The notes under the pieces were generated by a model that ran no database searches, was not told the origin of the DNA, and saw only the letters and a list, made by a program, of their open reading frames with translations. Of a DNA stretch of 64,000 bases, positions 19,365-62,780 are shown one piece after another; the stretch's first letter is position 1; each line of letters opens with the position of its first letter. The stretch covers positions 188,604-252,603 of IMG/VR virus record IMGVR_UViG_3300020810_001156. One strand, written 5' to 3'. Both the position numbers and the translations under genes were made by a program.

Positions 19365-19426
19365 TATTTATACCAAATAAGTTTCATTAATAGGTTATAG
19401 TAAATTTAATCTAAAAGAAATTTATT

Positions 19427-20684: not shown

Positions 20685-21242
20685 ATGTTTATCAAAGAAC
20701 AAGAGGATATGATAGCTAGAAGTTTATTCACAGAATCAAAAAAACTCAGAGTATTTGATTTCGATGACACACTTGTTTTTACGAATTCTTACATTTATGT
20801 AAAAACTATTGATGGTAAAGAGAAAAAGTTAACACCTGGTGAATATGCTCTTTACAATGAAAAGCCAGGTGAAGAATACGATTTCAGAGATTTCTACTCT
20901 GTTCAAGAACCCCAAGAATTAAAAAAGATTACCAAAGTTCTTAAAAGAATAATCAATAAGAACAAAGGAGAGGGTGTATTCATTCTAACCGCAAGACCTC
21001 AAGCGGTAGATAAGCATGTACAAAGATATTTAAAAGATATTGGTATTAATCAAAAAATACCAGTAATAGGTTTACAATCTAATAACCCAAAAGATAAATC
21101 AGATTGGGTTGAAAAAAAGATTGATAACGAAGGTTATGATGATGTTTACTTTGCAGATGATTCTATTAAGAATGTTAATCAAATGAAAAAGATGTTAAGG
21201 GGTAAAAATATCAAATGGAGAGTTCAACACATTAAACATTAA
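20685..21242 (+). CDS. HAD-superfamily phosphatase (RNA-repair/PNK-phosphatase-like)
   Basis: FDFDDTL, ILTAR, K, FADDS..N; start may be ATG 20709. Confidence 0.75.
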   Translation: MFIKEQEDMIARSLFTESKKLRVFDFDDTLVFTNSYIYVKTIDGKEKKLTPGEYALYNEKPGEEYDFRDFYSVQEPQELKKITKVLKRIINKNKGEGVFILTARPQAVDKHVQRYLKDIGINQKIPVIGLQSNNPKDKSDWVEKKIDNEGYDDVYFADDSIKNVNQMKKMLRGKNIKWRVQHIKH

Positions 21243-21261: not shown

Positions 21262-21510
21262 ATGATTAGATTAACCGAAATATTGAACGAAGGAAAAGAA
21301 CCTGAAATCATTACTCAATTAAGAGATGTATTGAAGAATGGGTATAAAACTCTTAAAGACCCAAAAAGTGGTAAGAGAATGAAAGTGGATACTTACTCAG
21401 CATCTGCAATCGTTGGTGTATATGATAAATTAAATCCATCTAATCAAGAAAAGTTTGTGAAGCAGGGTTTGTTGGGTATGCAATCATTAGCATTTAAATT
21501 TATAAAATAA
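21262..21510 (+). CDS. Small protein with MIRLTEILNE leader
   Basis: Leader shared with the next two ORFs; VDTYSASAI..VYDKLN..NQ module. Confidence 0.6.
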   Translation: MIRLTEILNEGKEPEIITQLRDVLKNGYKTLKDPKSGKRMKVDTYSASAIVGVYDKLNPSNQEKFVKQGLLGMQSLAFKFIK

Positions 21511-21511
21511 A

Positions 21512-22189
21512 GTGATTAAGTTAACTGACATATTAAATGAAGATTGTTGGAAGGGCTACAAACAAATTGGTGGCAAAATGAAGAATGGAAAGATGGTGCC
21601 AAATTGTGTTCCTGAATCGGTTGAAGAAAACTCAATCAATGAAGCTTCAATGACTGTTTCAATTGCAAATGTTGTAGATGAACTTTTTCCAAAGGAATTC
21701 TTTTGGGTTTATAATCCACAAGATAAAGAAAGAGTAAAATCTGTGATTGGTGATTTGGTTAGAACTCTAAATACTTTCTACAAAAAGCAAGGTATTAAAG
21801 TTAGATTTACAGATTCTAATATTAGAATGAAAATGTACACTAAAGAATCGGCAAGAGAGGATTTAACATCTTCAGAGAGATTAGAACTATATAAGTTATA
21901 CTCAAAGGCGATGAAAGCAATGCCACAATCTCCAAACCAAAAAAAGATTATCAAACAAATTAATGTGTTAAGAACCAAAGCTGGTATGAAACCATTAAAA
22001 GAGGTAACTTTGAATGAGATTGGTATTTTTAATATACAAAGTTACACAAAGGGGATTTTACCTGCAGGATATATGGATACAACAACTCCTCAGAAAAAAG
22101 AAAAATATCGTTCAACAGTTAGAGATTTAATGCAAACATTAAATTCTTTTTGGAAAAGAAATAATATACCATTTAGAGTAAGAAAATGA
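21512..22189 (+). CDS. Modular protein with MIKLTDILNE leader and CWKGY..VPNCV module
   Basis: GTG start; internal NSINE and TLNE linkers; duplicated module. Confidence 0.6.
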   Translation: MIKLTDILNEDCWKGYKQIGGKMKNGKMVPNCVPESVEENSINEASMTVSIANVVDELFPKEFFWVYNPQDKERVKSVIGDLVRTLNTFYKKQGIKVRFTDSNIRMKMYTKESAREDLTSSERLELYKLYSKAMKAMPQSPNQKKIIKQINVLRTKAGMKPLKEVTLNEIGIFNIQSYTKGILPAGYMDTTTPQKKEKYRSTVRDLMQTLNSFWKRNNIPFRVRK

Positions 22190-22524
22190 TAAAGTTAGAT
22201 GATTTATTACATGATATCGTAAACCATCCACTAAACGAAGATTTGAGAAAGTGGTTTGGTAAAGGAAAGACTGGTTCATCATCTGGTGGTGGTTGGGATA
22301 GATACGGAACTGATGGACAGAAGTTAGGTAAATGTGGCGATGGTGAAGAAGGTGATGCTTATGCAGCTTGTTTATCTAAAGAAAAGGCAGCTAAGTTAGG
22401 ACCTAAAGGTAGAGCTGCATTTGTAAAAAGAAAAAGAGCTGACCAAAAGAAAGCTGGTGATACTAAAAAAGGTGGAAATAGAAAAAAGGGTAAGACACCT
22501 ACCTTTTCAAAAACAGGTGCATAA
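22186..22524 (+). CDS. Basic protein with MIKLDDLL..PLNE leader
   Basis: EDLRKWF...CG...ACL...KRK module typical of large phages. Confidence 0.6.
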   Translation: MIKLDDLLHDIVNHPLNEDLRKWFGKGKTGSSSGGGWDRYGTDGQKLGKCGDGEEGDAYAACLSKEKAAKLGPKGRAAFVKRKRADQKKAGDTKKGGNRKKGKTPTFSKTGA

Positions 22525-25311: not shown

Positions 25312-26922
25312 ATGAGAACCTACAATGTAATACTCAAAAAAGGTGTAGATTATGAATCGTTTTGGGATGATATGGAAAATGAAAACGATGGGGGTAATCT
25401 TTATATCCCTAATCGTAGAGTAGATTCTCCTAACCTTAGACCAGATTCACAAAGACAAACTTGGTACACTCTTTCGGATGAAGAAGCTGAAACTGTAAGA
25501 AATGATGAAAGAGTTCTTGCAGTTGAAATTCCACCCGAAGATAGGGATGATATCGTAATTGGACATCATGCAATCCAAGAGGGTGTATTTACCAAAACAA
25601 CTTCTGATAGTGGTAATTATCAAAATTGGGGATTAATAAGAACTTTATCTAAATCAAATAATTATGGTAGTTCAAATACCTCACCAACTACTGAATATCC
25701 ATATTCATTAACTGGTAAGGGGGTTGATGTTGTAATTCAAGATAGTGGTATTCAAATAGACCATCCAGAATGGGCAGATAGATTTGAATCGGTAGATTGG
25801 GATACATGGGGTGCTTTTACACAATCATCAAATCACGATAGAGATTATGATGGACATGGTTCACATTGTGCTGGTATTGTAGCAGGTAAAACATTTGGGT
25901 ATGCTAAAAAAGCAAAAGTATATCATCAAAAGATAAGTGGATTAGAAGGTAGTGGTGATAGTGGAACTGGTATTTCACCAACCTATGCATTTGATGCTAT
26001 TAAAGGTTGGCATAATGCTAAATCAGTTGACCCAAATACTGGGTATGTTAGACCAACTGTGGTAAATATGAGTTGGGGTTATCTGAGAACATTTACAAAT
26101 GCTCAAATATCAAACATAAATTATAGAGGTACTGATTATAGTGGTACTGATATTGATACTACAACTGAAAGAGAAAACAATTACGGATTGATGTATTCAT
26201 TGTATTCAGTATCAGGTCCAACATATGCTAGTAATTTAAGAATAGCATCGGTTGATACTGATATTGAAGAGTTGTTAGAAGCGGGTGTTCATGTGTTTGT
26301 TGCTGCTGGAAATAGGAGTAATAAAGTAGATGAGAGTGGTGGTGCGGATTATGATAATAATTATACACACACATCATCGGGTACAACTTACTATCACAGA
26401 GGTTCTTCTCCATATGGTGATGCAGGGCAAGATGGAACTGGACCAAGAGCAATCATAGTTGGTAATATGGATTCATCAGTACATGATACCACAACTGATA
26501 GAAAAGCAACATCATCGGAAACTGGACCTGGTGTTGATATCTATGCACCTGGTACAAATGTTATGAGTGCAACTTCTAATACAAATAAGTGGGGAAGTGG
26601 TTCTCAAAATTATTATTTGAATTCATCATTTAAGCAAACTAATATATCTGGTACATCTATGGCATCTCCTCAAGTTGCAGGTGTTGCTGCATGTATTTTA
26701 GAATTATATCCACAATGGACACCATCTCAATTAAAACAATGGTTACTGGATAATGCAGGTTCTGCAATCTTAAATACTGGTACTGATAATGATTGGACAA
26801 ATGATAGAAGTTTGAAAGGTGGAGCAGAAAAAGTATTACATTTACCATTTACTTCATCAGAACCTGCAAAAATAAGTGGTTTCGATAATTTAACCTTTAA
26901 CATAAAAATCAAAGAACAATAA
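25312..26922 (+). CDS. Subtilisin-like S8 serine protease
   Basis: Triad motifs VVIQDSG, DGHGSHCAG and SGTSMASPQVAG; oxyanion AAGN; N-terminal prodomain. Confidence 0.92.
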   Translation: MRTYNVILKKGVDYESFWDDMENENDGGNLYIPNRRVDSPNLRPDSQRQTWYTLSDEEAETVRNDERVLAVEIPPEDRDDIVIGHHAIQEGVFTKTTSDSGNYQNWGLIRTLSKSNNYGSSNTSPTTEYPYSLTGKGVDVVIQDSGIQIDHPEWADRFESVDWDTWGAFTQSSNHDRDYDGHGSHCAGIVAGKTFGYAKKAKVYHQKISGLEGSGDSGTGISPTYAFDAIKGWHNAKSVDPNTGYVRPTVVNMSWGYLRTFTNAQISNINYRGTDYSGTDIDTTTERENNYGLMYSLYSVSGPTYASNLRIASVDTDIEELLEAGVHVFVAAGNRSNKVDESGGADYDNNYTHTSSGTTYYHRGSSPYGDAGQDGTGPRAIIVGNMDSSVHDTTTDRKATSSETGPGVDIYAPGTNVMSATSNTNKWGSGSQNYYLNSSFKQTNISGTSMASPQVAGVAACILELYPQWTPSQLKQWLLDNAGSAILNTGTDNDWTNDRSLKGGAEKVLHLPFTSSEPAKISGFDNLTFNIKIKEQ

Positions 26923-26959: not shown

Positions 26960-29431
26960 ATGGGATGGAGTGAGAAATATAAGAAATCAATAGATTGTAA
27001 CAACCCAAAAGGTTTCAGTCAAAAAGCCCATTGTGCTGGTAAAAAGAAAAACGAAGATATGGTATTTGAAGAAATAACCGAAGATATTCTAAATGAAAAG
27101 CTGATTACCTATGGTAATAGAAAACCATATGGTCAAGTAGTTTTTATGGCAGGTGGAGCTGGTAGTGGTAAAGGATTCGCTATCAAAAACTTTGTAGATT
27201 CTGCATCTTTCAAAATTAGAGATGTGGATGAAATGAAGAAACAACTTCAAATTCTCAATAGATTAGGTAAATTAGATATTAGAAGTATCCTAAAAAAGTA
27301 TGGTAGAAATATCAAACTTAAAGATTTAGATTTAATCAGAAAGATTGAAAAGGATGGGTACAAACTTCAAAACTTTAATCTTAAAAATCCAGACCATGTA
27401 ATGGCCCTTCACATTTTAGTAAAGGCAATGGGTATTAAAGATAATACTTTAGAAAAACTATTATTGGGTAAAAATAATCCTGAAACTCTTCCAAACATTT
27501 TATTTGATATCACCGCAAAGGATGTAACCGATATCACTTCAGTTGTTCCAAAATTAAAAGAAGTTGGATACAAAGCAGATAATATTCACTTAACTTGGGT
27601 ACTTACAAATTATGTAACTGCAATGGTTAATAATAAGAATAGAGCTAGAATGGTACCTGAGGATATCCTTTTAAAAACACATGAAGGTGCTGCAAATACT
27701 ATTTGGGGATTAGTAACTAAAGCTCTTCCAAAAGGAATGAATGGTAGAGTTGATGTAATCCTTAATAACCCAGAACACACTGTATTCTATACTGATACAG
27801 ATGGTAAAACTATTAGTGGTGGTGTAAAGGGATTCCTCTCACTTCCACTTAAAAAAGAAAAGGGTGGTATCTTTCCAGAAAAAGTTTGGAAAGATAAGTT
27901 ATTCAATTGGGTTAAAGATAATGCACCAGAATCAATCACATCAAATATGAAAGAATCAGTAAACGAAGGTAAGAAATCCAAAGATTCTACCGGTGTAAGA
28001 AAAGCAGAAGCTATTCATAATAATGCAGATACAATCATTGATTTGGTACTTAAAGATAAAAAAGATGTTAAAGAAGTAGTAAGTGTAATGGGGCCTGTAT
28101 TGATTAATGCAATAAAAGCAACTTTAAAACATAAGTTCAAACCAATTACTGGTAATGAAGATGCATTAAAAAAGTTTCAATCTAAACTAAAAGATTTCCT
28201 TAAATTCACAGAAGCGTTAGTTAAAAAACCATCAAAGGTTGGTGTTAAAAGACTTGAAACTATGCACAGAGAATGGTGGAATTGGAACCATGGTGCAGAT
28301 GTAGTATTAAATGGAAAAATAGGAAATACTATCATTGAATCAGTAAACGAAGGAAAATTCAAACCATCACAAGTTCGTTCAGCAATCTCAAAAGTTAAAA
28401 AAGGACTAATGAGAAAGTGGAAACAAAAAGGTGGATACGAAAACTTTGGACAAAAAGAACTATCTCAAATGAAAGATAAGTTTGATTACAATGCATATGG
28501 AGATAAGGATGAAAGAGAAATTTCACATATGTTAGATGCATTTGATAATTGGGCAATGAACTACGATGGTAATATGAGAGAAGCAAGAAGGTCAGTAGTT
28601 CACAAAGCTGCAAAGAAAGGAAGTTTTCCAGTATCTTTAGTAGTGGTTAAAAATGGTAAAGTAATTGACCAAGAGTTAGTAAAAACTCCAGAAGCTGTAC
28701 CTGCTGCATTTAATGTTATTCAATCAAAACACAAAGGAGCTACTGTTCATATTGAAGATAAAACAGGTAAAAGATTATTTTCAGAATCAATAGATGAGGG
28801 TATGTTCTCCCTTATAGACCAAATCAGAGATGAATCTAAGAATGTTAAAGATTTTATTAAGAATGTTCTTTCTGATAGAAACTTTAAGGATATGAAAAAC
28901 GATAAACAATTTATCCAATACTTAGGTTCTATCTATGAATCGGTAAACGAAGCAATGGATATCAATGACCCTATCTTAGTAAGATTGAGAGCATCAGCGA
29001 TTGAAAAAGCTGAAAAAGAAAAATTAGCAAAAATAAGAGCAGCCCAAATGAAGAAAAACCAAATGGCTGCTAAAAAACTCCAACAAGCAGAACTCAAAAT
29101 CAAAGCACTCAAAAAGAAGAGAGCAGAGGTAATGAGAGATATGGAACAAGAAGCTGAAGCAGAAGGTGGACCAATCGCTGATAGATATGGTAACTTATTA
29201 AATAAGATTGATAACGATATCATCAAATTGGGAGGTAATCCAATGAGTGAATCAATCGAAGAAAGAATCAATCTATTCGTAGAAGAAAACGTACCAACTA
29301 AACCAGACAAATGGTCATATGCAGTTTCTCAAGCAAAAGAGAAATTTGATGTATATCCATCGGCATATGCAAATGCATGGGCTTCCAAGAAATATAAAGA
29401 ACTTGGTGGTGGTTGGAGAAAGAAAAAGTAA
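26960..29431 (+). CDS. Modular polyprotein-like protein containing a zeta-toxin/AAA_33-like P-loop kinase domain
   Basis: FMAGGAGSGKG, N..R.RMVP; modules separated by ESVNE, ESIDE and ESIEE. Confidence 0.65.
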   Translation: MGWSEKYKKSIDCNNPKGFSQKAHCAGKKKNEDMVFEEITEDILNEKLITYGNRKPYGQVVFMAGGAGSGKGFAIKNFVDSASFKIRDVDEMKKQLQILNRLGKLDIRSILKKYGRNIKLKDLDLIRKIEKDGYKLQNFNLKNPDHVMALHILVKAMGIKDNTLEKLLLGKNNPETLPNILFDITAKDVTDITSVVPKLKEVGYKADNIHLTWVLTNYVTAMVNNKNRARMVPEDILLKTHEGAANTIWGLVTKALPKGMNGRVDVILNNPEHTVFYTDTDGKTISGGVKGFLSLPLKKEKGGIFPEKVWKDKLFNWVKDNAPESITSNMKESVNEGKKSKDSTGVRKAEAIHNNADTIIDLVLKDKKDVKEVVSVMGPVLINAIKATLKHKFKPITGNEDALKKFQSKLKDFLKFTEALVKKPSKVGVKRLETMHREWWNWNHGADVVLNGKIGNTIIESVNEGKFKPSQVRSAISKVKKGLMRKWKQKGGYENFGQKELSQMKDKFDYNAYGDKDEREISHMLDAFDNWAMNYDGNMREARRSVVHKAAKKGSFPVSLVVVKNGKVIDQELVKTPEAVPAAFNVIQSKHKGATVHIEDKTGKRLFSESIDEGMFSLIDQIRDESKNVKDFIKNVLSDRNFKDMKNDKQFIQYLGSIYESVNEAMDINDPILVRLRASAIEKAEKEKLAKIRAAQMKKNQMAAKKLQQAELKIKALKKKRAEVMRDMEQEAEAEGGPIADRYGNLLNKIDNDIIKLGGNPMSESIEERINLFVEENVPTKPDKWSYAVSQAKEKFDVYPSAYANAWASKKYKELGGGWRKKK

Positions 29432-36314: not shown

Positions 36315-36375
36315 AAATAATTCACAAAAGGCTTGTATATGTCAAAAATTATACATATATTAGTACTGTAATTGA
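36313..36375 (+). repeat. Promoter-bearing direct repeat, copy 2
   Basis: CTTG-N20-TATATTAG followed by TACTGTAATTGA. Confidence 0.8.
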
Positions 36376-36404
36376 GAGATAAGTTAAAACCTAAAACAAA
36401 TAAT

Positions 36405-38522
36405 ATGAGTAAATACGGAAATTCTTCTTACTGGTTGCAAGATTGGGAAGATGATGATATTGTAGTTGATACGATGACCGATGTAGAGAAGAAATCACAT
36501 GACCTCTACAAATTATCAGCTGGTAAACGAGCTATCTCAAACTTCGTTAATATCGTTACCAATGATTCCATTCCAGTAAAATTCAACACTAGAGGTGATT
36601 CCTACACCGATGGTAAATCAGTAGTAATTGGTTCTAATATTGTAGAACCTAAAGATTTCGATATCGCTGTTGGTTTGGCACTGCACGAAGGTTCACACAT
36701 CAAACTTTCAGATTTTAATGTTCTAAGAGATATTTACAATTTGATTCCCGATTATGTAAAGGATGGGGCAATCAAAAAAGGTATTTACAATGTAACCTCA
36801 GTAATCAAAGATATTTGGAATGTGATTGAGGACCGAAGAATTGATAGATTCGTATTTGATTCGGCTCCAGGTTATAGAGATTACTACCGAGCAATGTACG
36901 ATAAGTACTTCAACGATAAGTTGATTGATAAAGGATTACTTTCAGATGAATATACTGAAGAGAGTGTTGATTCTTATATGTTCCGAATTATCAACCTTCA
37001 CAACAAAAATACTGACCTTAACGCTTTAAAGGGGCTTAGAGAGATTTATAAGGTAATTGGGTTAGGTAGTATAGATAGATTAAAAAACACCTCAGATTCC
37101 TTTGAAGTGGCTCTAAAGGTATTCCAAATCATTATGAGTAACTTACCATCGGCTGAAAATGGTGAAGGTGAGGGTTCTGGTAATGGTGACCAGAACGAAG
37201 AACTTCAACCTCAGAATTCTGAAGGTAATGGTGGTAATAGTTCTGATGAGCCAAGAGAGATGACTGATGAAGAGTTCGAAGATTTTTCAAATGGAATGAA
37301 TGGTTCAGCTCCTTCTGGTGGTGGTGATGATACTCCAACTGGTGGTAGTGGAATGAATGTTGATAATATGCCCGATGAGATGGGTGGTAACCCATCTAAT
37401 TCATCATCTAAGGGTGGTAAAGAAGTTGAAAAGGTAAAACTATCAGATAGACAAAAAGACCTTCTTCAAAAGAAGATTGAAAAACAAAAGAAGTTTATGG
37501 ATGGTGATATTCGTAAGAAAACCATCTCTAAAAAAGATAATGATAACCTTCAAGCAATTGATGAGAGTGGTTCTGAAGCAGTAACTGTTGGACAGAATAT
37601 TGAGCAAGGTTGGGGAAGTGTTTCCAAAGGTGTTCAATGTATTGTGGTTAAGAAATTAACTCAATCACTATTGGAATCAGAAATGTTCCCAATGACTTAC
37701 AATAACTATTGGAATACTTCTGAAGAGGGTGTAATCAAACGATATAACGAAAAAGAAGTAATCGAAGGTATCAAACTTGGTACTATCTTAGGTAAGAAAC
37801 TTCAAGTAAGAGGTGAAGATAGAAACACAATCTTTAATCGCCAGAAGCATGGTAAGATTGATAAGAGAATGATTTCTTCTTTAGGATTTGGTAATGAGAA
37901 TGTTTTCTCTTACATTGAAACTGATTCTTACAAAAAAGCTAATCTTCACATCTCAATCGATGCTAGTGGTTCGATGAATGGTGATAAGTGGAATAAGACT
38001 ATGACTAATGTGGTTGCACTTTGTAAGGCAGTTGATATGATTCAGAATCTTTCAATTCAGGTTTCATTTAGAACTACTTCACAAAATACTCCTTACATTG
38101 TGATGGCTTATGATTCTAAAGTAGATAAGTTCTCTAAAGTAAAAAAGATGTTTCCAACACTTAATCCTGGTGGAACTACTCCTGAGGGGTTATGTTATGA
38201 AGCAATTATGAAAAACTTTTTGAGTTCTAACAATGATATGGATTCATACTTCCTTAATATTTCAGATGGTGAACCTTACTTTGGTACTACTGGAATGTAC
38301 TACTCTGGTGATATCGCTTTCAATCACACTAGAAAAATGGTGAAGCAGATTGAGGGAATGGGAATCAAAACTCTTTCTTACTTTGTAGAGACTTGGGTAA
38401 AAGAAGGTGGTGAACCATCCGATGGATTTAAGAAGATGTATGGTAAGGCAGCAAAACTGATTGATGTAACCAATGTTGCTCAGATTACCAAAACAATGAA
38501 TCAACTATTTTTAACAAAATAA
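36405..38522 (+). CDS. HExxH metallopeptidase-like domain + acidic linker + vWA domain protein
   Basis: LHEGSH, N..EDRRID, E/G/S-rich linker, MIDAS IDASGSM, GGTTP, ISDG; ATG 36405 preferred. Confidence 0.85.
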   Translation: MSKYGNSSYWLQDWEDDDIVVDTMTDVEKKSHDLYKLSAGKRAISNFVNIVTNDSIPVKFNTRGDSYTDGKSVVIGSNIVEPKDFDIAVGLALHEGSHIKLSDFNVLRDIYNLIPDYVKDGAIKKGIYNVTSVIKDIWNVIEDRRIDRFVFDSAPGYRDYYRAMYDKYFNDKLIDKGLLSDEYTEESVDSYMFRIINLHNKNTDLNALKGLREIYKVIGLGSIDRLKNTSDSFEVALKVFQIIMSNLPSAENGEGEGSGNGDQNEELQPQNSEGNGGNSSDEPREMTDEEFEDFSNGMNGSAPSGGGDDTPTGGSGMNVDNMPDEMGGNPSNSSSKGGKEVEKVKLSDRQKDLLQKKIEKQKKFMDGDIRKKTISKKDNDNLQAIDESGSEAVTVGQNIEQGWGSVSKGVQCIVVKKLTQSLLESEMFPMTYNNYWNTSEEGVIKRYNEKEVIEGIKLGTILGKKLQVRGEDRNTIFNRQKHGKIDKRMISSLGFGNENVFSYIETDSYKKANLHISIDASGSMNGDKWNKTMTNVVALCKAVDMIQNLSIQVSFRTTSQNTPYIVMAYDSKVDKFSKVKKMFPTLNPGGTTPEGLCYEAIMKNFLSSNNDMDSYFLNISDGEPYFGTTGMYYSGDIAFNHTRKMVKQIEGMGIKTLSYFVETWVKEGGEPSDGFKKMYGKAAKLIDVTNVAQITKTMNQLFLTK

Positions 38523-38544
38523 ATGAAAAATAAATGAGAAAAGG

Positions 38545-38606
38545 CTTGCATGTTTCAAATCTTTTTCTTATATTAGTATAGTAATTGAGTGGGAGAGAAA
38601 CTCCCA
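38545..38606 (+). promoter_or_regulatory. Promoter (third variant of the repeat) with a 5' stem-loop
   Basis: CTTG-N20-TATATTAG, GTAATTGA, then TGGGAG-AGAAA-CTCCCA. Confidence 0.65.
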
Positions 38607-38635
38607 AAGTTTAAAACCCTAAAATAATAAAAGTT

Positions 38636-39847
38636 ATGACAGATTTTAAAATTGGTTTTGTAAAGAATGAAGTTTATAAGGTGGAGGCCTTTGGTAACTC
38701 ATTTAAACTGATTGATACTAAAGGTACGAAAGTTGGTACTTTGGGTATCGGAACTGGTACTCGTAAGAGCGCCTATGAGAATGGAGAAGCTCTCCAAGCT
38801 TATGTTCAAAAGAATGGTAAGAAAGTTTACCGAAAAGTTGGTATGGATGTTTACAACAACTTAGTTGCTCCGATGGCTACCGAAAATGGTGGTGTTCAAT
38901 TCGAAGATAAATCGGACCATACGGCTATTAAAGATTTTATCCACAAAGGTTCAGTAAACCTTAAACCAACTGAGTTGGTGATGACTGAACTAAAGTGGAA
39001 GTATCTCATCAGAAGTGCGGTGAGAGCTAAGAATATTATGATGACAGGACCTGCTGGTTGTGGTAAAACTATGGCCGCTAAAGCATTGGTTAAAGCACTT
39101 GACCGTCCTGATTTTTACTTCAACTTAGGAGCAACGCAAGACCCGCGAGCTACCCTAATTGGTAACACACAATTCGATTCTAAGAATGGTACTTACTTCT
39201 CAGAATCATCATTCATCAAAGCAATCAAAACTCCAAACGCAGTTATCCTATTGGATGAGTTGAGTAGAGCTCACCCTGATGCTTGGAACATTTTGATGAC
39301 CGTTTTAGATGGTGGACAACGATACATCCGATTGGATGAAGCAGAAGGTTCACCAATTGTGAAAGTTGCTGAAGGAGTTACCTTCATCGCTACGGCTAAC
39401 ATTGGTAATGAATATACATCGACCAGAGTTATTGACCGAGCGATTCTTGACCGATTCGTTACCATTGAAATGGATGTTCTAAATGATGAGCAAGAATTTG
39501 GTTTGTTGAAGTTTATGTTCCCTGAGGTGAACGAAGAAGATTTAAAAGCTGTAGCGGAAATCGCACACCATACTCGAACTCAATCGATGAGTGATAGTGG
39601 TAAAGTTACAGCAATGGTTTCCACTCGTGCTAGTGTTGAGATGGCTGGATTGATTTATGATGGTTTCGATTTATTCGAAGCAGCTGAGATTTCAATCTTC
39701 CCATTCTTCTCTAACGATGGTGGAGTTGATTCTGAAAGAACTTACATTAAGCAGTTAGTTCAGAAGTATGTGAAAGATGAGGGTGAAGCTCTCTTCAATG
39801 AGCAGGAAACCGAAACGAATTCGGAAGATGAGATTCCGATGTTTTAG
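38636..39847 (+). CDS. MoxR/CbbQ/NorQ-like AAA+ ATPase
   Basis: GPAGCGKT, LLDELSR, ATAN, D.A..DRF, STR. Confidence 0.9.
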   Translation: MTDFKIGFVKNEVYKVEAFGNSFKLIDTKGTKVGTLGIGTGTRKSAYENGEALQAYVQKNGKKVYRKVGMDVYNNLVAPMATENGGVQFEDKSDHTAIKDFIHKGSVNLKPTELVMTELKWKYLIRSAVRAKNIMMTGPAGCGKTMAAKALVKALDRPDFYFNLGATQDPRATLIGNTQFDSKNGTYFSESSFIKAIKTPNAVILLDELSRAHPDAWNILMTVLDGGQRYIRLDEAEGSPIVKVAEGVTFIATANIGNEYTSTRVIDRAILDRFVTIEMDVLNDEQEFGLLKFMFPEVNEEDLKAVAEIAHHTRTQSMSDSGKVTAMVSTRASVEMAGLIYDGFDLFEAAEISIFPFFSNDGGVDSERTYIKQLVQKYVKDEGEALFNEQETETNSEDEIPMF

Positions 39848-44468: not shown

Positions 44469-46445
44469 ATGAAAAAAATATTGGTAATTATGTTGAGTAT
44501 GGTGAGTATTTCCCTATCTGCTCAACAAAGTGATACGACTATCGTATTAGATGATGTAGTAATAACTGCTACTAGAAGTGAGATAAGTTTGGAAGATTCA
44601 CCCGTACCAACGGAAGTGATTGGAAAGAAAGAGATTGAAGAACTAAATTTAATTACGATGCAAGACCTCCTTAATTTAAAAGGATTTGTTGCACCGATGA
44701 AAAGTGGAGGTTTCCAATTAAGAGGATTATCTTCCGAATATGTTTTAGTAATGATTGATGGAGTTCCAATCGCAGGTAGAGAAAGTGGTGCATTAGATAT
44801 CTCGAATATCAACCTTGCAAATGTGGAAAGAGTTGAAATTGTAAAAGGTTCAATGTCTGCACTTTGGGGTAACCATGCAATTGGTGGTGTAATCAACATC
44901 ATTACAAAGAAGAGTGGAGAACCATCTATAATGTTGAATACACAATATGGAACAAACAACACATCATTAGTTGGATTAACTTCAACAGTGGGTAAAGATA
45001 AATTTAAGAACATATCTAAGATTACATTAGGAAGTTCAGATGGTTTTGATATCGACCCATTAACTTATGGTCAAAATCAATTACCATTTAAGTTGTTGAA
45101 TATTACCAATAGAACTACTTACGATGATGGAACGAACCAATACTCATTAGGATTAACTCACTTAGGAAAAACATCCGAAGGTGAAACTGTAACTGAAACA
45201 AATACTCAGGGGCAATTAGTACCAGTTGATGAGGTAAACGAATCCCAAAACTTTATTGTTGATTTGAACTACAAAAGAAGTTTTGGTAAATATGTGAGTG
45301 AGATTAAAGTATCTAATTCAAACTTCAGTAACTCAAACAAATCTTCTTTTGAATATTTCGGACAACAAGTAGTTCAGTTAGATGAGAGTGACCAAAACAT
45401 TTTCCAACCTGAGATGATTAACAATTACAATTGGAATTCTAAAAACTCAACTACATTTGGATTTGGTTATAGAGGACACGATTACGATACTGAAAGATAT
45501 GGTGGTGATAAATCTCTAAACTCTTACTTTGGATATGTTCAACATTATCTAAACTTAGATAAACTAAATTTAGTAGTTGGTGGTAGATACGATAACTATT
45601 CAGATTTTGGAAACAACTTCTCACCAAAAGTATCTGCAACTTATGATTTGGGGAAATTCAAATTGAGTTCATCGGTTGGTTATGGATTCAGAGTACCTGA
45701 TTTTAGAACCTTATACATTAACTATGGTGGATTCTCATCTGGGTATTGGGTATTAGGTTCGTATAACATTGAAGAACAAATCAATTTTTATTCTCAACAA
45801 AATCTAATTGCATTTGTATCTTATGGATTAGAAGATATTACTCAACTAAGTCCTGAAACTTCTATCTCATATGATTTTGGTGTATCGTATAAATTAAATG
45901 AGAGTAGTAAAGTAGGATTAAACTTATTTAGAACCAATACAACTGATTTGATTGAATCAGTTCTTGCTGGAATGTTTGTAAACCAAACTTTACTTTTTGG
46001 ATACACAAATATCTCAGAAGCAACATTTACAGGTTTAGAGTTTGAAACTTTGATTCAAAAAGATAGATTTAGATTTGATGGTTCTTATCAGTATTTAGAA
46101 ACTGAAGCAAATAAAGCAGATGGAACTGAATTCTTTTTGGGTGAAAGACCTAAACATTTAGTTAACCTTGCAACTACTTATACATTGAAGAATGGTTTAT
46201 CATTAACTTTAAATGGAGTTCATAAATCAGAGTACTTCTTTAGAGATGTTGATAGAAGTGGAACTCAGGACGCAAATGAGTTTGTACCTTCTCACACATT
46301 GTTGAATACTTTGATAAGTTCTCCTGTTGTTAAGAATATGACAGTTGGTGTTGGTGTTAACAATATTTTAGATTTTACTAATGTAGAGTATCTAAAACAA
46401 CAAAATGGTAGAACCATTTTTGGAAAAGTAACTTATAAATTTTAA
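44469..46445 (+). CDS. TonB-dependent outer-membrane receptor (CirA/BtuB/HmuR-like)
   Basis: Signal peptide, VVITATR, plug IDGVP...VERVEIVKGS.SALWG..AIGGVINIITK, beta-barrel, C-terminal YKF. Confidence 0.92.
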   Translation: MKKILVIMLSMVSISLSAQQSDTTIVLDDVVITATRSEISLEDSPVPTEVIGKKEIEELNLITMQDLLNLKGFVAPMKSGGFQLRGLSSEYVLVMIDGVPIAGRESGALDISNINLANVERVEIVKGSMSALWGNHAIGGVINIITKKSGEPSIMLNTQYGTNNTSLVGLTSTVGKDKFKNISKITLGSSDGFDIDPLTYGQNQLPFKLLNITNRTTYDDGTNQYSLGLTHLGKTSEGETVTETNTQGQLVPVDEVNESQNFIVDLNYKRSFGKYVSEIKVSNSNFSNSNKSSFEYFGQQVVQLDESDQNIFQPEMINNYNWNSKNSTTFGFGYRGHDYDTERYGGDKSLNSYFGYVQHYLNLDKLNLVVGGRYDNYSDFGNNFSPKVSATYDLGKFKLSSSVGYGFRVPDFRTLYINYGGFSSGYWVLGSYNIEEQINFYSQQNLIAFVSYGLEDITQLSPETSISYDFGVSYKLNESSKVGLNLFRTNTTDLIESVLAGMFVNQTLLFGYTNISEATFTGLEFETLIQKDRFRFDGSYQYLETEANKADGTEFFLGERPKHLVNLATTYTLKNGLSLTLNGVHKSEYFFRDVDRSGTQDANEFVPSHTLLNTLISSPVVKNMTVGVGVNNILDFTNVEYLKQQNGRTIFGKVTYKF

Positions 46446-56277: not shown

Positions 56278-56568
56278 ATGGCAAATATTGGTAAACCCCT
56301 TGCAGATAGGGTTCTTCTTAAATTAGAAGATGTATCTGAATCAAAATCAAGTGGTGGTATTATACTCAACACAACCACACAAACCATTCAAACTGCGGAA
56401 GTAGTTGAAGTATCCGATGGATTTATTGGAAACAATGGTGAATTAATCAAATTAAGTGTAAATAGAGGTGATAAAGTTCTCATCAATAACGGAGCTGGGC
56501 AAAAGGTAAAGTTAGATGGAGTAGATTATCACTTAGTTAGAGAATCAGAAATTTTAATGGTAGTATAA
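56278..56568 (+). CDS. groES: Co-chaperonin GroES
   Basis: PLADRV, SGGIIL, GDKVL, RESEIL. Confidence 0.92.
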   Translation: MANIGKPLADRVLLKLEDVSESKSSGGIILNTTTQTIQTAEVVEVSDGFIGNNGELIKLSVNRGDKVLINNGAGQKVKLDGVDYHLVRESEILMVV

Positions 56569-58197
<1,629 letters not shown>

Positions 58198-59663: not shown

Positions 59664-59684
59664 TTTATACTTATATTTATATAC

Positions 59685-60515
59685 ATGAGAAGAATAATCA
59701 TTTTAATACTTTTAGGATTTCTATTAACATCTTGTGGAAGTATGTATCAATTTTCCACAATCAATCACACACCAGAATATATTGGTGATGTGAGAGTTGA
59801 TAAGATTGAAAATAGAATGGATTTGAATTGGAAGTTAAGAACTGATAATCAATTCAGATGGAATTTTGCTCAATATGCACAGAACCAACCTTTGAGTTGG
59901 TATTACGATAACTCTTGGGAGTTAGGATTATATACGAACCCATACTTTACTACTTGGGATTTTTACTTCAATAGAACTCAACTTTGGTGGGATTGGAGTT
60001 TCAACTATCCTTACAATTGGGGATGGAACCGTTGGTATCCATTTGGATACAATAGATGGGGTTGGAACTATGGATTCAGAAACAATTGGGCATGGGGATA
60101 TAATCCTTACAGATGGAATAGTGGATTTGTTCATAATCCTCAACCAATAAGAAATAGAAATGTTGTTGTGGTGAATGGTAGAAGAGGTTCTAACAACACA
60201 AACATTATAATAAACAGAGGCAGGTCGAATAATTCGACCACCAATAATTCCAATGTTAGAGTTAGAAGGTATGATAACAAAGATAGAATTGTACCTCGTA
60301 GAGATTATAACGATATAAAGAGTAGAGTTAGAACACCTATAAACAATAACTCAACACCTACGAGAAATTATAATGTACCAAGACCTAATAACAATAACAA
60401 TATAAGAAGAACTCCACCACCGCCTCCAACAAGACCTGTGGTTAGACCAAATGTAAGTAGAGGTTCAAATGTAGGTAGAAGTTCATCTCAGGTTATCAAA
60501 AGAAATAATGAGTAA
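59685..60515 (+). CDS. Lipoprotein with W/Y/N-rich and R/N/P-rich low-complexity regions
   Basis: Lipobox LTSC; WGWN repeats; disordered tail. Confidence 0.65.
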   Translation: MRRIIILILLGFLLTSCGSMYQFSTINHTPEYIGDVRVDKIENRMDLNWKLRTDNQFRWNFAQYAQNQPLSWYYDNSWELGLYTNPYFTTWDFYFNRTQLWWDWSFNYPYNWGWNRWYPFGYNRWGWNYGFRNNWAWGYNPYRWNSGFVHNPQPIRNRNVVVVNGRRGSNNTNIIINRGRSNNSTTNNSNVRVRRYDNKDRIVPRRDYNDIKSRVRTPINNNSTPTRNYNVPRPNNNNNIRRTPPPPPTRPVVRPNVSRGSNVGRSSSQVIKRNNE

Positions 60516-62625
60516 TCTAAAACTAAACATACCAAAGGATGTAATCAAGATACATAAGGCATTCAAAAAGAATGGTAAAAAACTTTATGTAGTTGGTGGT
60601 GCGGTTAGAGATGCCATCTTAGGTAAATCACCTAAAGATTTCGATTTAGCAACTGATGCAAAACCTGAAGAAGTTGAGAAGATAGCAAAAGATAATGGAA
60701 TATCATCTAAACCACTTGGAAAGGCATTTGGTGTTGTTTCACTTTTTATTAATAATGAAGAATATGAGATTGCAACTTTCAGAAAAGATATCGGAAAAGG
60801 TAGGAGACCTTCATCGGTAGATTACACAGATATACATGGTGATGTTAAGAGAAGGGATTTAACTGTAAATGCCTTATTCTATGACATCGATAGAAAAGAG
60901 ATTGTAGATTTAGTTGGTGGTATAGAAGATTTGAAAAAGAAAAACATCAGAACTGTTGGTAAAGCAAAAGAAAGATTTGATGAGGACCCGTTAAGAAAGT
61001 TAAGAGCATTAAGATTTTGGACAAGATTGGGTGGTAAGTTAGATAAAGAGTTATTAGATGCTTTACAAAATGACCCATCAATAAAAGGAGTTAGTTCTGA
61101 AAGAATTAGAGATGAATTCTTAAAATCAATCAAATCATCAAAGAATACAAAAGAGTATATGGAGATGTGTGATAAGATTGGATTTACTTCTCAGATACTT
61201 CCAAATCTAAAAGTATCAAAACCATATCCTAAAACAAACGATTATATTTTATTCTTAGCATGGGTATTAAGAAAGAACTCACCAGTTGTACTATCTAAAA
61301 TTCTAAATAAGATAAACTATACAAATGATGAAAGAGATGAAATAGTTTATCTAAATACACTTCAAGATTTCAAACCTGAAAATGTTTTAGTTTATAAAAA
61401 AGGGCAGAGAAAAGCAGAAGATAGTAGAATAATTACCTTTGGTAAAATGATTGGTAAAGATTTTACTAAGTTTGTAAAGTTCAAAACATCAGTAACTGGT
61501 AAGGATGTTCCATCAGATATTAAAGGACCTGAAATTGGATTGTGGATAGCAAGTAAAGAAAAGGAAAACTATCTAAACGAAGGTTTGAAAGAATTAGGAA
61601 TCACCGATTTCAAATCACTCTTTAAGAAAATGCCATCTGATTTACAAAAGAGAGTGTATAACTTAAAGAACTTTGGACAGAGAATTGATAAACACCCTGA
61701 AGGGAATGTACTTAAACATACAATCACAGTTGTAAATCGTTCAATCAAAGAAGATGATATCGATATTGCAATCGCAGCAATGTTCCACGATATAGGAAAA
61801 GATGAAACTGCTGGTATCCATCCAAAGAAAGGACATATTACACATTTTGGACACGAAAAAGTATCAGCTAATTTAGTTAAGAAATATAAAAATTGGATTG
61901 AATCAGTTGGTGGTAACACTGCCAATGTTTATTACATTGTAAAGAATCATATGAGATTCAAACAATTAGATAATATGAGAATCCAAAAGGTAATGAAGTT
62001 AAAGGCATTCAGAGCATTTGATAAGTTAGGTAAATTCTCTAAACACGATAGAAGTGGGTTAGATATAAGTGAAGATAAAATTCCTGGCGGATTAGCTGGT
62101 GAGATGAATATCTACGATATTGCAAATATGCACAAAGTTGATATTGATGATTTAAATAAGGAATTACAAATGGGTATTAAAGTTGAAATGGAACACACTT
62201 CAGATAGAGAGATAGCAAAAGAAATTGCATTAGACCATTTATATGAGGACCCAAAATATTACACTAAACTTGCCGATATTGAAGAAAGTAAAGGTAAATT
62301 AAGACCAGCTGATAAGTTAAGAAGAAAAAGAGCCATGGCTGGTAAGAAAGCTGCTATTCAAAGAAGGAAGTTAAGAACAATGAAGAGGAAAAAACCTCTT
62401 GCTAAACTAAAAAAGATTGCATATAAAATGGCATATTTACAAGTTTATAAACAATTTATGGAGGATTTATTTCCTGGTATGAATAAAAGTGATTTATCCA
62501 TTCAACAGGCAAAGATAGTTCATAAGAATGTATTAAGAAAGAAAGGTAGAGTTTTAAAACGAGCTAAGTTCAAATTCTTACCAGCTCTAAGAGCAAAAGA
62601 AGCAGAAAAATTTAAAAAGGATTAA
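60508..62625 (+). CDS. cca: CCA-adding/polyA polymerase-family nucleotidyltransferase fused to HD, DUF5661-like and basic modules
   Basis: VGGAVRD, DFDLAT, RRDLTVNA, RFDEDPLR.LR; HPEG..HT..HDIGK; GIKVEMEH..IALDHL.E.P.YY. Confidence 0.8.
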   Translation: MSNLKLNIPKDVIKIHKAFKKNGKKLYVVGGAVRDAILGKSPKDFDLATDAKPEEVEKIAKDNGISSKPLGKAFGVVSLFINNEEYEIATFRKDIGKGRRPSSVDYTDIHGDVKRRDLTVNALFYDIDRKEIVDLVGGIEDLKKKNIRTVGKAKERFDEDPLRKLRALRFWTRLGGKLDKELLDALQNDPSIKGVSSERIRDEFLKSIKSSKNTKEYMEMCDKIGFTSQILPNLKVSKPYPKTNDYILFLAWVLRKNSPVVLSKILNKINYTNDERDEIVYLNTLQDFKPENVLVYKKGQRKAEDSRIITFGKMIGKDFTKFVKFKTSVTGKDVPSDIKGPEIGLWIASKEKENYLNEGLKELGITDFKSLFKKMPSDLQKRVYNLKNFGQRIDKHPEGNVLKHTITVVNRSIKEDDIDIAIAAMFHDIGKDETAGIHPKKGHITHFGHEKVSANLVKKYKNWIESVGGNTANVYYIVKNHMRFKQLDNMRIQKVMKLKAFRAFDKLGKFSKHDRSGLDISEDKIPGGLAGEMNIYDIANMHKVDIDDLNKELQMGIKVEMEHTSDREIAKEIALDHLYEDPKYYTKLADIEESKGKLRPADKLRRKRAMAGKKAAIQRRKLRTMKRKKPLAKLKKIAYKMAYLQVYKQFMEDLFPGMNKSDLSIQQAKIVHKNVLRKKGRVLKRAKFKFLPALRAKEAEKFKKD

Positions 62626-62627
62626 TT

Positions 62628-62780
62628 ATGGCAACATGTGTAAAGTGTGGATGTGAATCACATCATGGTGATGTAGACCCAATTTCATCACATAAGTTTA
62701 TCAGAAAAAACGATTGTACTGAATGTGAATGTGCAAAATGTAGTTGTGAGGAGTGTAACCCTTATTTAGAAAGTAAATAA
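62628..62780 (+). CDS. Metallothionein-like Cys/His-rich 50-aa protein (not in ORF track)
   Basis: MATCVKCGCESHH...CTECECAKCSCEEC: 9 Cys, 3 His; fills the intergenic gap exactly. Confidence 0.6.
   Translation: MATCVKCGCESHHGDVDPISSHKFIRKNDCTECECAKCSCEECNPYLESK

Follow-up and report, generated by a model that had tools for sequence, protein, structure and literature searches.

Architecture of P0001

We analysed a 64-kb stretch of DNA (hereafter the window) that forms the last part of a 252,603-bp virus record in IMG/VR (IMGVR_UViG_3300020810_001156), and focused on a single uninterrupted open reading frame (ORF) at 60508..62625 on the + strand, whose product of 705 residues and 81 kDa, P0001, carries a tRNA nucleotidyltransferase followed by three further modules. 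The record, which belongs to a large T4-like marine phage, is rated complete by CheckV, has a G+C content of about 32%, and bears almost all of its genes on the + strand. From the N-terminus, P0001 consists of a class II tRNA nucleotidyltransferase (NTase; module 1, 60508..61581, residues 1-358), a Cca-type HD phosphohydrolase (module 2, 61582..62073, residues 359-522), a DUF5661 module (module 3, 62074..62286, residues 523-593) and a very basic helical cassette (module 4, 62287..62622, residues 594-705), all on the + strand. The modules are separated by YLNE at junction 1 (61570..61581, +, residues 355-358, followed by GLKE), DISE at junction 2 (62062..62073, +, residues 519-522, in a predicted disordered linker) and DIEE at junction 3 (62275..62286, +, residues 590-593, where the last helix of DUF5661 ends; SKGKLRPAD comes next). 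The L/I-x-E-type sites at these places are LNE, LKE, ISE and IEE, and in the AlphaFold model all three junctions lie at helix ends or in low-confidence coil between structured parts. Comparison with its homologues shows P0001 to be a chimera of four modules, with hydrophobic-x-Glu at each of the three places where they meet.

Predicted activities of the nucleotidyltransferase and HD modules

The Pfam search placed the PolyA_pol head domain at residues 26-148 (E = 1e-35) and PolyA_pol_RNAbd at residues 187-235, and P0001 was assigned to the tRNA nucleotidyltransferases by PHROGs (phrog_2244). The residues of the GGxVRD and DxD motifs (G30, G31, R34, D35, D44 and D46) are invariant in 42 homologues, as are those of motif B (RRD; R115, R116 and D117) and of the nucleotide template in motif D (EDxxR; E159, D160 and R163). 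The AlphaFold model of P0001, with a mean predicted local distance difference test (pLDDT) score of 70.7 overall and 80-95 in the NTase body, was matched by Foldseek to the solved CCA-adding enzymes 6q52, 7oqx, 4x4w and 1miv with E values of 9e-12 to 2e-10 over about 370 columns. Stand-alone CCA enzymes of cultured phages finish at approximately residues 350-360, which is the same place as the end of module 1. Judging from its domains, motifs and predicted fold, module 1 is a complete class II tRNA nucleotidyltransferase with head, neck, body and tail.

The HD domain was found at residues 411-486 with 30-34 bits against a Pfam cut-off of 22, and the module has the appearance of the HD phosphohydrolases that are attached to class II NTases (HPEGNVLKHT .. 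FHDIGK). Its metal ligands (H..HD..D; H396, H404, H427 and D428) are nearly invariant among homologues. Among solved sequences, the HD region of PDB chains 3wfo-3wfs comes closest (E = 8e-4); these are class II NTase chains that were deposited as poly A polymerase / tRNA processing enzyme. P0001 also matched NF008137, 'multifunctional CCA addition/repair protein'. The HD module is thus classed, by motif and family, as a Cca-type phosphoesterase.

The NCBIfam models leave the product of the NTase less well defined. The best CCA models scored 190 and 186 bits, under their equivalog cut-offs of 439 and 290, and the PcnB model scored 185.6 bits, under its cut-off of 306. Since the CCA and PcnB models score alike and all remain below their cut-offs, CCA addition versus polyadenylation is not settled by the sequence. 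A preliminary description of this DNA, made from its letters, had taken the enzyme for a tRNA CCA repair enzyme; the class II motifs and the CCA-enzyme fold agree with that assignment, and the hidden Markov models do not separate it from a poly(A)-polymerase specificity.

The DUF5661 and basic modules

DUF5661 (PF18905) was matched at residues 537-593 with a score of 54.1 bits, above the cut-off of 27. In a scan of the phage's own genome, module 3, then scoring 58.8 bits, was the sole copy found. The domain also occurs in gp191 of the cultured Flavobacterium phage immuto, in cyanophages and in Caulobacter phage Cr30, while in Vibrio phage VPs20 it lies inside a DUF2213 head-module protein located between the terminase and major capsid genes. 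A literature search found no published work on DUF5661.

The basic cassette contains 37 Lys or Arg against 7 Asp or Glu residues, giving a net charge of approximately +30, and forms long helices in the AlphaFold model; no Pfam family was matched within residues 594-705. Among 1.84 billion representatives, this tail was found in 32 clusters, always inside the same system of exchangeable cassettes and confined to this phage group. It occupies any position in giant modular proteins and is also present in small proteins that begin with the leader described below.

Module boundaries in homologues

Homologues of P0001 number in the thousands, and we compared the best 120 of them, with core identities of 56-100% and lengths of 515-1230 residues. 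Junction 1 is conserved across homologues as EKE[NK][YF]L[NS]E, and behind it there may be no insert, a single cassette or two cassettes in tandem. At least five such cassettes, unrelated to one another and with lengths of 34, 42, 56, 80 and 153 residues, were distinguished, each terminating in MNE, INE, IRE, VRE, IKE or VNE immediately ahead of the HD module. The HD module in turn terminates in ..KFSKHDRGGL[DG]E, and at junction 2 the homologues either reach a stop codon (P0047 ends ..GGFNE) or continue into shuffled cassettes, among which are a Cys-containing one, several unnamed ones, DUF5661, two basic kinds and a HAD phosphatase. The order itself is permuted in P0062, P0076, P0078 and P0082, where the HD module, ending ..RLGE, precedes the NTase, ending ..FMNE, and a short cassette ending ..NINE then leads into a ligase-like module.

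The break-points of BLAST alignments among the 120 proteins fell on hydrophobic-x-E at frequencies of 0.22 and 0.30 compared with 0.06 for random positions, an excess of 3.6-5x. When 16 module starts were used as anchors, 14 of them had a Glu immediately ahead of the module in every distinct upstream context or in almost every one, including 63/63 contexts for the ligase-like module, 21/21 for the two HD anchors and 14/17 for the NTase. Because the anchors were picked after the pattern had been seen, the number of independent contexts is the evidence here, and not a P value. The anchors for basic tail type a and for DUF5661 were placed two residues too far in, and are uninformative either way. 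At the junctions the residue at P2 varies and the Glu at P1 is fixed. This comparison of homologous sequences proves the three junctions of P0001 to be genuine module boundaries.

The four modules and the three junction tetrapeptides named in the preliminary description were recovered as described, and the junction style that it had seen in common with another window gene, ORF 26960, holds as well. It had also proposed to compare the domain order among homologues, and the outcome is that modules are permuted, inserted or stopped at the junctions while the junction Glu is conserved.

A prohead protease and candidate targeting leaders

The genome encodes a Peptidase_S77 (PF03420) prohead protease of the T4 gp21 type at genome positions 101308-101739 (101.6 bits; phrog_207, head maturation protease, 1e-53). 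Its gene spans 101242-101829 and belongs to a head module with the order large terminase, T4-type portal, two proteins of no assigned function, protease, two more proteins, an acidic scaffold-like protein and a gp23-like major head protein. The gp21 protease of T4 cleaves after L/I-X-E, and internal proteins of that phage enter the prohead by means of a capsid-targeting sequence (CTS), ten residues at the N-terminus, that is removed by the gp21 protease (PMC9026906; PMC3012670).

Among 112 classified CCA-HD homologues, 48 carry a leader of 10-16 residues that ends in L-x-E exactly before the NTase, examples being MISLTELLPINE, MIKLETLLSLNE and MMEKVDFIHKIFGLNE. Similar starts were found on other proteins of the system: about 40 stand-alone ligase-like proteins (414 residues) start with MIRLKKILNE-VLLKE, small proteins with a basic tail start with MIKLTEILSE, and P0078, a polyprotein of 1230 residues whose gene adjoins terminase and T4-type portal genes, starts with MIKLTDIFE. 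P0172 is a fusion that keeps an internal leader, which indicates gene fusion by read-through.

We built a position matrix from 21 external leaders only and ran it on the N-termini encoded by the phage's own genome. The highest scores, 31.3 and 31.0, were obtained for the window genes at 21262 and 21512, followed by 16.3 for g102382 and 11.0 for the window gene at 22186, and the rest scored 5 or less. The three window genes are consecutive and start with MIRLTEILNE (21262-21510), MIKLTDILNE (21512-22189) and MIKLDDLLHD (22186-22524). The gene g102382 encodes the head-module protein directly past the protease gene, and a second, internal copy of the leader in this protein scored 22.0. As a separate observation, the gene at 21512-22189 also contains a cassette that is found at junction 1 of some CCA homologues (62% identity over 40 residues).

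A longer linker, E-S-[VI]-x-E with G or A as the next residue, was found in four proteins only: two head-module proteins encoded on either side of the protease gene, the product of the window gene at 21512 and that of ORF 26960; SVNE occurs 8 times compared with 1.8 expected. The codons of the linker differ between copies (TCA/TCG and AAC/AAT), and no conserved upstream DNA cassettes were seen around the leaders. As the linker codons vary and the flanking DNA is not conserved, the constraint acts on the protein. The same linker is present in Flavobacterium phage immuto, which has a DUF5661 module and one leader-bearing gene only. In this phage, gp40 begins with MIKLIDLLTE, and gp191, the DUF5661 protein, has an N-terminus that resembles a leader. 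The best reading of the leader and the Glu junctions may be that the targeting and processing of T4 are here extended to a series of linked cargo modules, in which a leader of the MIKLTDILNE type would be the analogue of the ten-residue CTS of T4.

The missing leader and chimeric origin of P0001

P0001 and approximately 50 of its nearest relatives start with MSNLKL.. at the module boundary, without the leader. This N-terminus is the mature end that would be expected from cleavage in the leader-bearing relatives, which suggests that the leader was cleanly lost. We considered whether a leader might be hidden upstream of the ATG, and found none, as the 11 in-frame codons back to the preceding stop read VEVHLRLSKEI. 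The basic tail was likewise rejected as a substitute for the leader, because the small proteins P0241, P0250, P0251, P0252, P0255 and P0257 have both; for the same reason, that leader and basic tail never co-occur among the CCA homologues appears to be a clade effect.

The origin of P0001 could be followed by synteny. In one relative, the same locus holds a CCA-HD protein only, 96% identical, with a stop codon at junction 2. In another, the CCA gene is absent and replaced by a gene for a 203-residue protein composed of the leader, a Cys cassette, a short stretch and a basic tail that is 93% identical to that of P0001. In the present genome, CCA-HD-DUF5661 is fused to the same basic tail. These three states of the locus point to P0001 as a recent chimera that was joined at a Glu junction and whose leader was lost.

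The preliminary description had proposed that the repair activity is packaged in the head, cleaved and injected. The encoded S77 protease and the leaders on many homologues speak for this proposal, and the leaderless state of P0001 and its nearest relatives speaks against applying it to this copy. Because the leader, the sole targeting signal that was identified, is missing, head packaging of P0001 is not indicated, and that P0001 itself enters the head and is cut seems a real possibility but somewhat less probable than its contrary.

Other modules of the cassette system

A HAD phosphatase (PF11019; phrog_415, 'polynucleotide kinase') is encoded at 20685-21242 of the window and has a 17-residue N-terminal extension ending in SLFTE, after which SKKLRVFDFD follows. 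It resembles the phosphatase part of phage polynucleotide kinase families, and in other phages the HAD module is fused C-terminally to CCA-HD (P0056-type homologues). ORF 26960 (26960-29431, 823 residues) begins with a 46-residue extension ending in ..ITEDILNE, continues with a P-loop module (phrog_5268), and contains five E-S-[VI]-x-E linkers between further modules of no assigned function; it is a clearer polyprotein than P0001. Its P-loop module was considered as a polynucleotide kinase, for which the PDB sequences gave no support, the only match being a sub-threshold one to Zeta_toxin. A subtilase (Peptidase_S8, 536 residues) is encoded directly upstream, at 25312-26922. In the preliminary description, the HAD phosphatase and the P-loop kinase were thought to supply end-healing activities matching the tRNA repair enzyme. 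The LFTE leader of the phosphatase was given correctly and the resemblance of this protein to the phosphatase part of polynucleotide kinase families fits that idea, while the P-loop module was not shown to be a polynucleotide kinase.

The ligase-like module is widespread and unnamed, with invariant KTDG, EG and K motifs. Its fold matches are weak (Foldseek E values of 0.07 or above, VIA Z 4-5), nearly all of them are to RNA or DNA ligases, and its AFDB clusters are mostly unnamed. From these structural matches, the module is probably a ligase; the canonical RNA ligase families PF09414 and PF09511 were not found in the genome. Outside the window, a polyprotein of 1048 residues encoded just upstream of the terminase gene (genome C1:90005-93151; L007:2005-5151) combines an NMNAT-like cytidylyltransferase, modules of no assigned function and a ligase-like module with KTDG, and it has modules in common with CCA-containing polyproteins elsewhere. 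In a metagenomic contig that carries P0095 (L008, 3680-11067), the genes for a P-loop AAA_33 kinase, two proteins of no assigned function, CCA-HD and another such protein follow one another, and every one of them begins with the leader. An NMNAT plus ligase-like gene stands among these leader genes but has a different N-terminus, and the whole run looks like an unfused version of the polyproteins.

We infer from these arrangements a cassette system of uncultured T4-like phages, in which RNA-repair-type modules are combined in varying order or stand alone, and whose modules would comprise the CCA-adding NTase, HD, a ligase-like nucleotidyltransferase, a P-loop kinase, a HAD phosphatase and an NMNAT-like enzyme. 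An RNA-repair theme of the system is plausible, the ligase and kinase roles being putative. The nearest cultured relative of the phage group appears to be a Flavobacterium phage.

Promoter-like motif and neighbouring genes

The ORF upstream of P0001 (59685..60515, +) encodes a lipoprotein-like protein of 276 residues rich in Asn, Trp and Arg. Its stop codon overlaps the start of P0001, with an overlap of 8 nt; the gene is co-transcribed with P0001 and lies outside the polyprotein. Four nucleotides before this ORF, and hence ahead of the operon that holds P0001, is a promoter-like motif, TATTTATA (59674..59681, +), whose extended form is TTATATTTATATA. Across the whole genome, ATATTTATA has 33 copies on the + strand, of which 30 lie within 60 nt upstream of a gene start compared with about 2.5 expected, often 4-30 nt from the ATG, and only 2 copies have the opposite orientation. 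In the window the copies are at 19365, 21250, 26946, 30569, 41975, 59151, 59674 and 63584. Genes for the tail sheath, the head-tail adaptor, head-module proteins and polyproteins have the motif in front of them, and TATATTTATAG sits 7 nt before the start of ORF 26960; no copy was found before the genes for DNA polymerase, helicase or ribonucleotide reductase. We rejected the hexamer of T4 late promoters, TATAAATA, as a candidate, as it is not enriched (10 copies vs 12.9 expected) and its reverse orientation is the real motif. This distribution fits late expression of the P0001 operon.

Several neighbouring genes were noted in their own right. A 50-residue protein with ten cysteines is encoded at 62628-62780, beginning 3 nt past the P0001 stop codon. 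A GroES-like gene (96 residues) is paired with a GroEL gene (541 residues) at 56278-58197, likewise in Flavobacterium phage immuto, and a TonB-dependent receptor with Plug and beta-barrel domains, an unusual phage cargo, is encoded at 44469-46445. A VWA-domain protein (716 residues) is followed by a MoxR/AAA_5 ATPase (403 residues) at 36372-39847. The head module, which lies outside the window, is followed by three giant ORFs (4828, 4590 and 3866 residues; genome C1:110811-153682). No tRNA genes were found by ARAGORN in the whole 252,603-bp genome, despite its jumbo size and the presence of a CCA-type enzyme.

Discussion

The explanation that we favour overall, and to which we would give an even chance, is that P0001 is a four-module chimera from a family whose cargo is targeted by a leader, cut by the prohead protease and co-ejected. 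A working model of packaging suggests itself because the junctions match the motif of a gp21-type protease and many family members carry a CTS-like leader. According to this model, family members would be synthesised late and the leader would mediate their entry into the prohead core. The prohead protease would then cut the chains into separate enzymes, with the junction Glu at P1 and usually Leu, Ile, Val or Met at P3. The freed enzymes would be co-ejected with the DNA, after which the CCA/HD pair may restore the 3' ends of host tRNAs. Since the phage has no tRNA genes, maturation of phage tRNAs, by which phage CCA enzymes are usually explained, is inapplicable and an action on host tRNA is favoured. 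P0001 would have arisen when a leaderless CCA-HD gene, with DUF5661, was joined to a basic tail that rides on a leader in the syntenic relative; otherwise P0001 may remain whole in the cytoplasm, where it would repair tRNA 3' ends and its basic tail could help to bind RNA. For the family, packaging, cleavage and injection are plausible by analogy with T4.

A number of observations weigh against this explanation. The matrix detected neither a leader nor a leader-like internal segment in P0001, and the relative whose leaderless CCA-HD protein stops at junction 2 in the same locus indicates that the add-on modules are not required for the enzyme to be used. Cellular CCA enzymes normally have NT and HD fused, an arrangement that requires no cleavage, and the CCA and PcnB models score alike, each under its cut-off. 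Within P0001, hydrophobic-x-E is not enriched (10 occurrences vs 13.7 expected from composition), so that the case for the junctions rests on homologues and not on counts within the protein; ahead of one basic-tail type, moreover, P3 is frequently not hydrophobic. The motif ATATTTATA also precedes a gene for a single-stranded DNA-binding protein (SSB), and the label 'late' is therefore not proven. Finally, no cultured phage carrying a P0001-type protein was found in our collection, and no proteomic evidence for any family member was found in the literature.

Much of this would be accounted for if P0001 were an ordinary cytoplasmic multidomain enzyme that is never packaged or cut, with the Glu junctions as relics of the cassette system that supplied its C-terminal parts and the basic tail as a tRNA-binding extension of a CCA-adding/repair enzyme produced in the course of infection, and we regard this as a serious possibility, if one that falls short of being the expected outcome. 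The N-terminus of P0001, M-SNLKL.., has no leader and coincides with the mature end expected for leader-bearing relatives, the CCA-HD-only version at the same locus in a relative is leaderless as well, and the NT-HD fusion is canonical for cellular enzymes, as the NF008137 match illustrates. Furthermore, the T4 prohead protease acts on prohead proteins, which enter via targeting propeptides (PMC9026906). However, within the leaderless clade the C-terminal cassettes keep swapping while Glu is kept at every junction, which suggests ongoing selection on this residue. Elsewhere, the proteins that carry the basic tail or DUF5661 are leader-bearing or belong to head modules, and the P0001 gene stands behind the promoter-like motif that is common to structural genes.

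The NTase could instead be a poly(A) polymerase, or tail host or phage RNA in some other way, and the basic tail would then correspond to the basic C-terminal region by which bacterial poly(A) polymerase binds RNA. The score of the PcnB model, equal to those of the CCA models, and the PDB poly(A) polymerase chains among the good matches are what one would expect of such an enzyme. Against it, the best structural and sequence matches are CCA-adding enzymes, the PHROG assignment is tRNA nucleotidyltransferase, and the NTase is consistently coupled to a Cca-type HD module. The head-domain stretch GKAFGVV also departs from the G-[RK]-[RK]-F signature of bacterial poly(A) polymerases. A tailing enzyme of this kind is thus rather unlikely. 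That the leader and Glu junctions are recombination hot-spots or signals for a different protease or pathway, as the extreme module shuffling, the P0172 fusion with its internal leader and the subtilase encoded beside ORF 26960 might suggest, is improbable, given that the junction codons vary and the flanking DNA is not conserved, which places the conservation at the protein level, that P2 is variable while the P1 Glu is fixed, that the motif is the known specificity of a protease family encoded in this genome, and that head-assembly proteins contain this linker and this leader as well.

Among known systems, the favoured explanation comes closest to the internal proteins and Alt of T4. A gp21-family protease is encoded here within a T4-type head module, and relatives of P0001 as well as other proteins of this genome begin with a leader of about ten residues that ends in L-x-E. 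The T4 internal proteins are very basic, and so are some of the payloads here. In contrast to T4, however, these payloads appear from their sequences to be of RNA-repair type instead of anti-restriction or ADP-ribosylating proteins, several of them are chained in one polypeptide with internal sites and shuffled between phages, and P0001 has no leader. Because of this missing leader, we do not file P0001 as a T4-type targeted protein, only as one built from such parts. In the giant phages phiKZ, 201phi2-1 and SPN3US, a gp21-related protease whose recognition motif is very short cleaves numerous head-internal proteins after Glu, and the propeptides of these proteins hold several redundant sites (PMC9026906). 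The double sites YLNE-GLKE and MIRL..LNE-VLLKE are reminiscent of these ejection and inner-body proteins, but the lineage here is T4-type by its major head protein, P3 is hydrophobic instead of Ser, Ala or Gly, and the payloads have recognisable RNA-repair enzyme domains.

In its logic the system also resembles the polyvalent proteins of phages and conjugative elements, in which two to fifteen conflict-related domains are found in variable combinations with a proposed delivery beside the DNA (Iyer et al. 2017, PMC5512222), and P0001 likewise unites several such domains in one polypeptide of variable architecture. In those proteins, processing is assigned to built-in metallopeptidase domains and not to prohead-protease sites between modules (PMC5512222), and the Pfam search of P0001 revealed neither a built-in peptidase nor a polyvalent signature domain. 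CCA-adding enzymes are not named in that survey, according to which RNA ligases were never seen together with the 2H phosphoesterases of polyvalent proteins (PMC5512222). Compared with the E. coli Cca-type enzyme, P0001 unites the same two catalytic families, class II NTase and HD, with the motifs of both conserved. Unlike in that enzyme, the HD domain here is a separable module, which homologues place first or set apart by inserted cassettes, and P0001 has two extra C-terminal cassettes and scores far under the equivalog cut-offs.

We found no description in the literature of a capsid-targeted or packaged tRNA nucleotidyltransferase or RNA ligase, and the CCA enzymes, RNA ligases and HAD/kinase end-healing enzymes of jumbo phages are described as ordinary expressed genes (PMC7824862). 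A far-reaching possibility would be that a whole RNA-repair toolkit, with a divergent RNA ligase among its members, is loaded by leaders into the capsids of widespread marine T4-like phages, released by the protease from combinatorial polyproteins and injected, and that it repairs tRNA damage by abortive-infection nucleases before phage gene expression, with the leaderless P0001 reaching the head via its cassette partners. We consider this possible, but less likely than not in its entirety.

The interest of the finding lies chiefly at the level of the family. Whether or not its members are packaged, the cassette system delimits dozens of small modules of no assigned function with exact boundaries, offers, for a large group of phages not yet in culture, a cleavage consensus along with a leader that is a candidate for capsid targeting, and brings out a widespread unnamed ligase-like family. 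The known answers of phages to tRNA-cutting defences, such as T4 Pnkp and Rnl1, phage tRNAs and phage CCA enzymes, are made after infection starts. If repair enzymes were indeed pre-packaged and injected, they would constitute a standing counter-defence that acts before transcription, and the principle of the T4 internal proteins, which serve in anti-restriction and ADP-ribosylation, would be extended to RNA repair.

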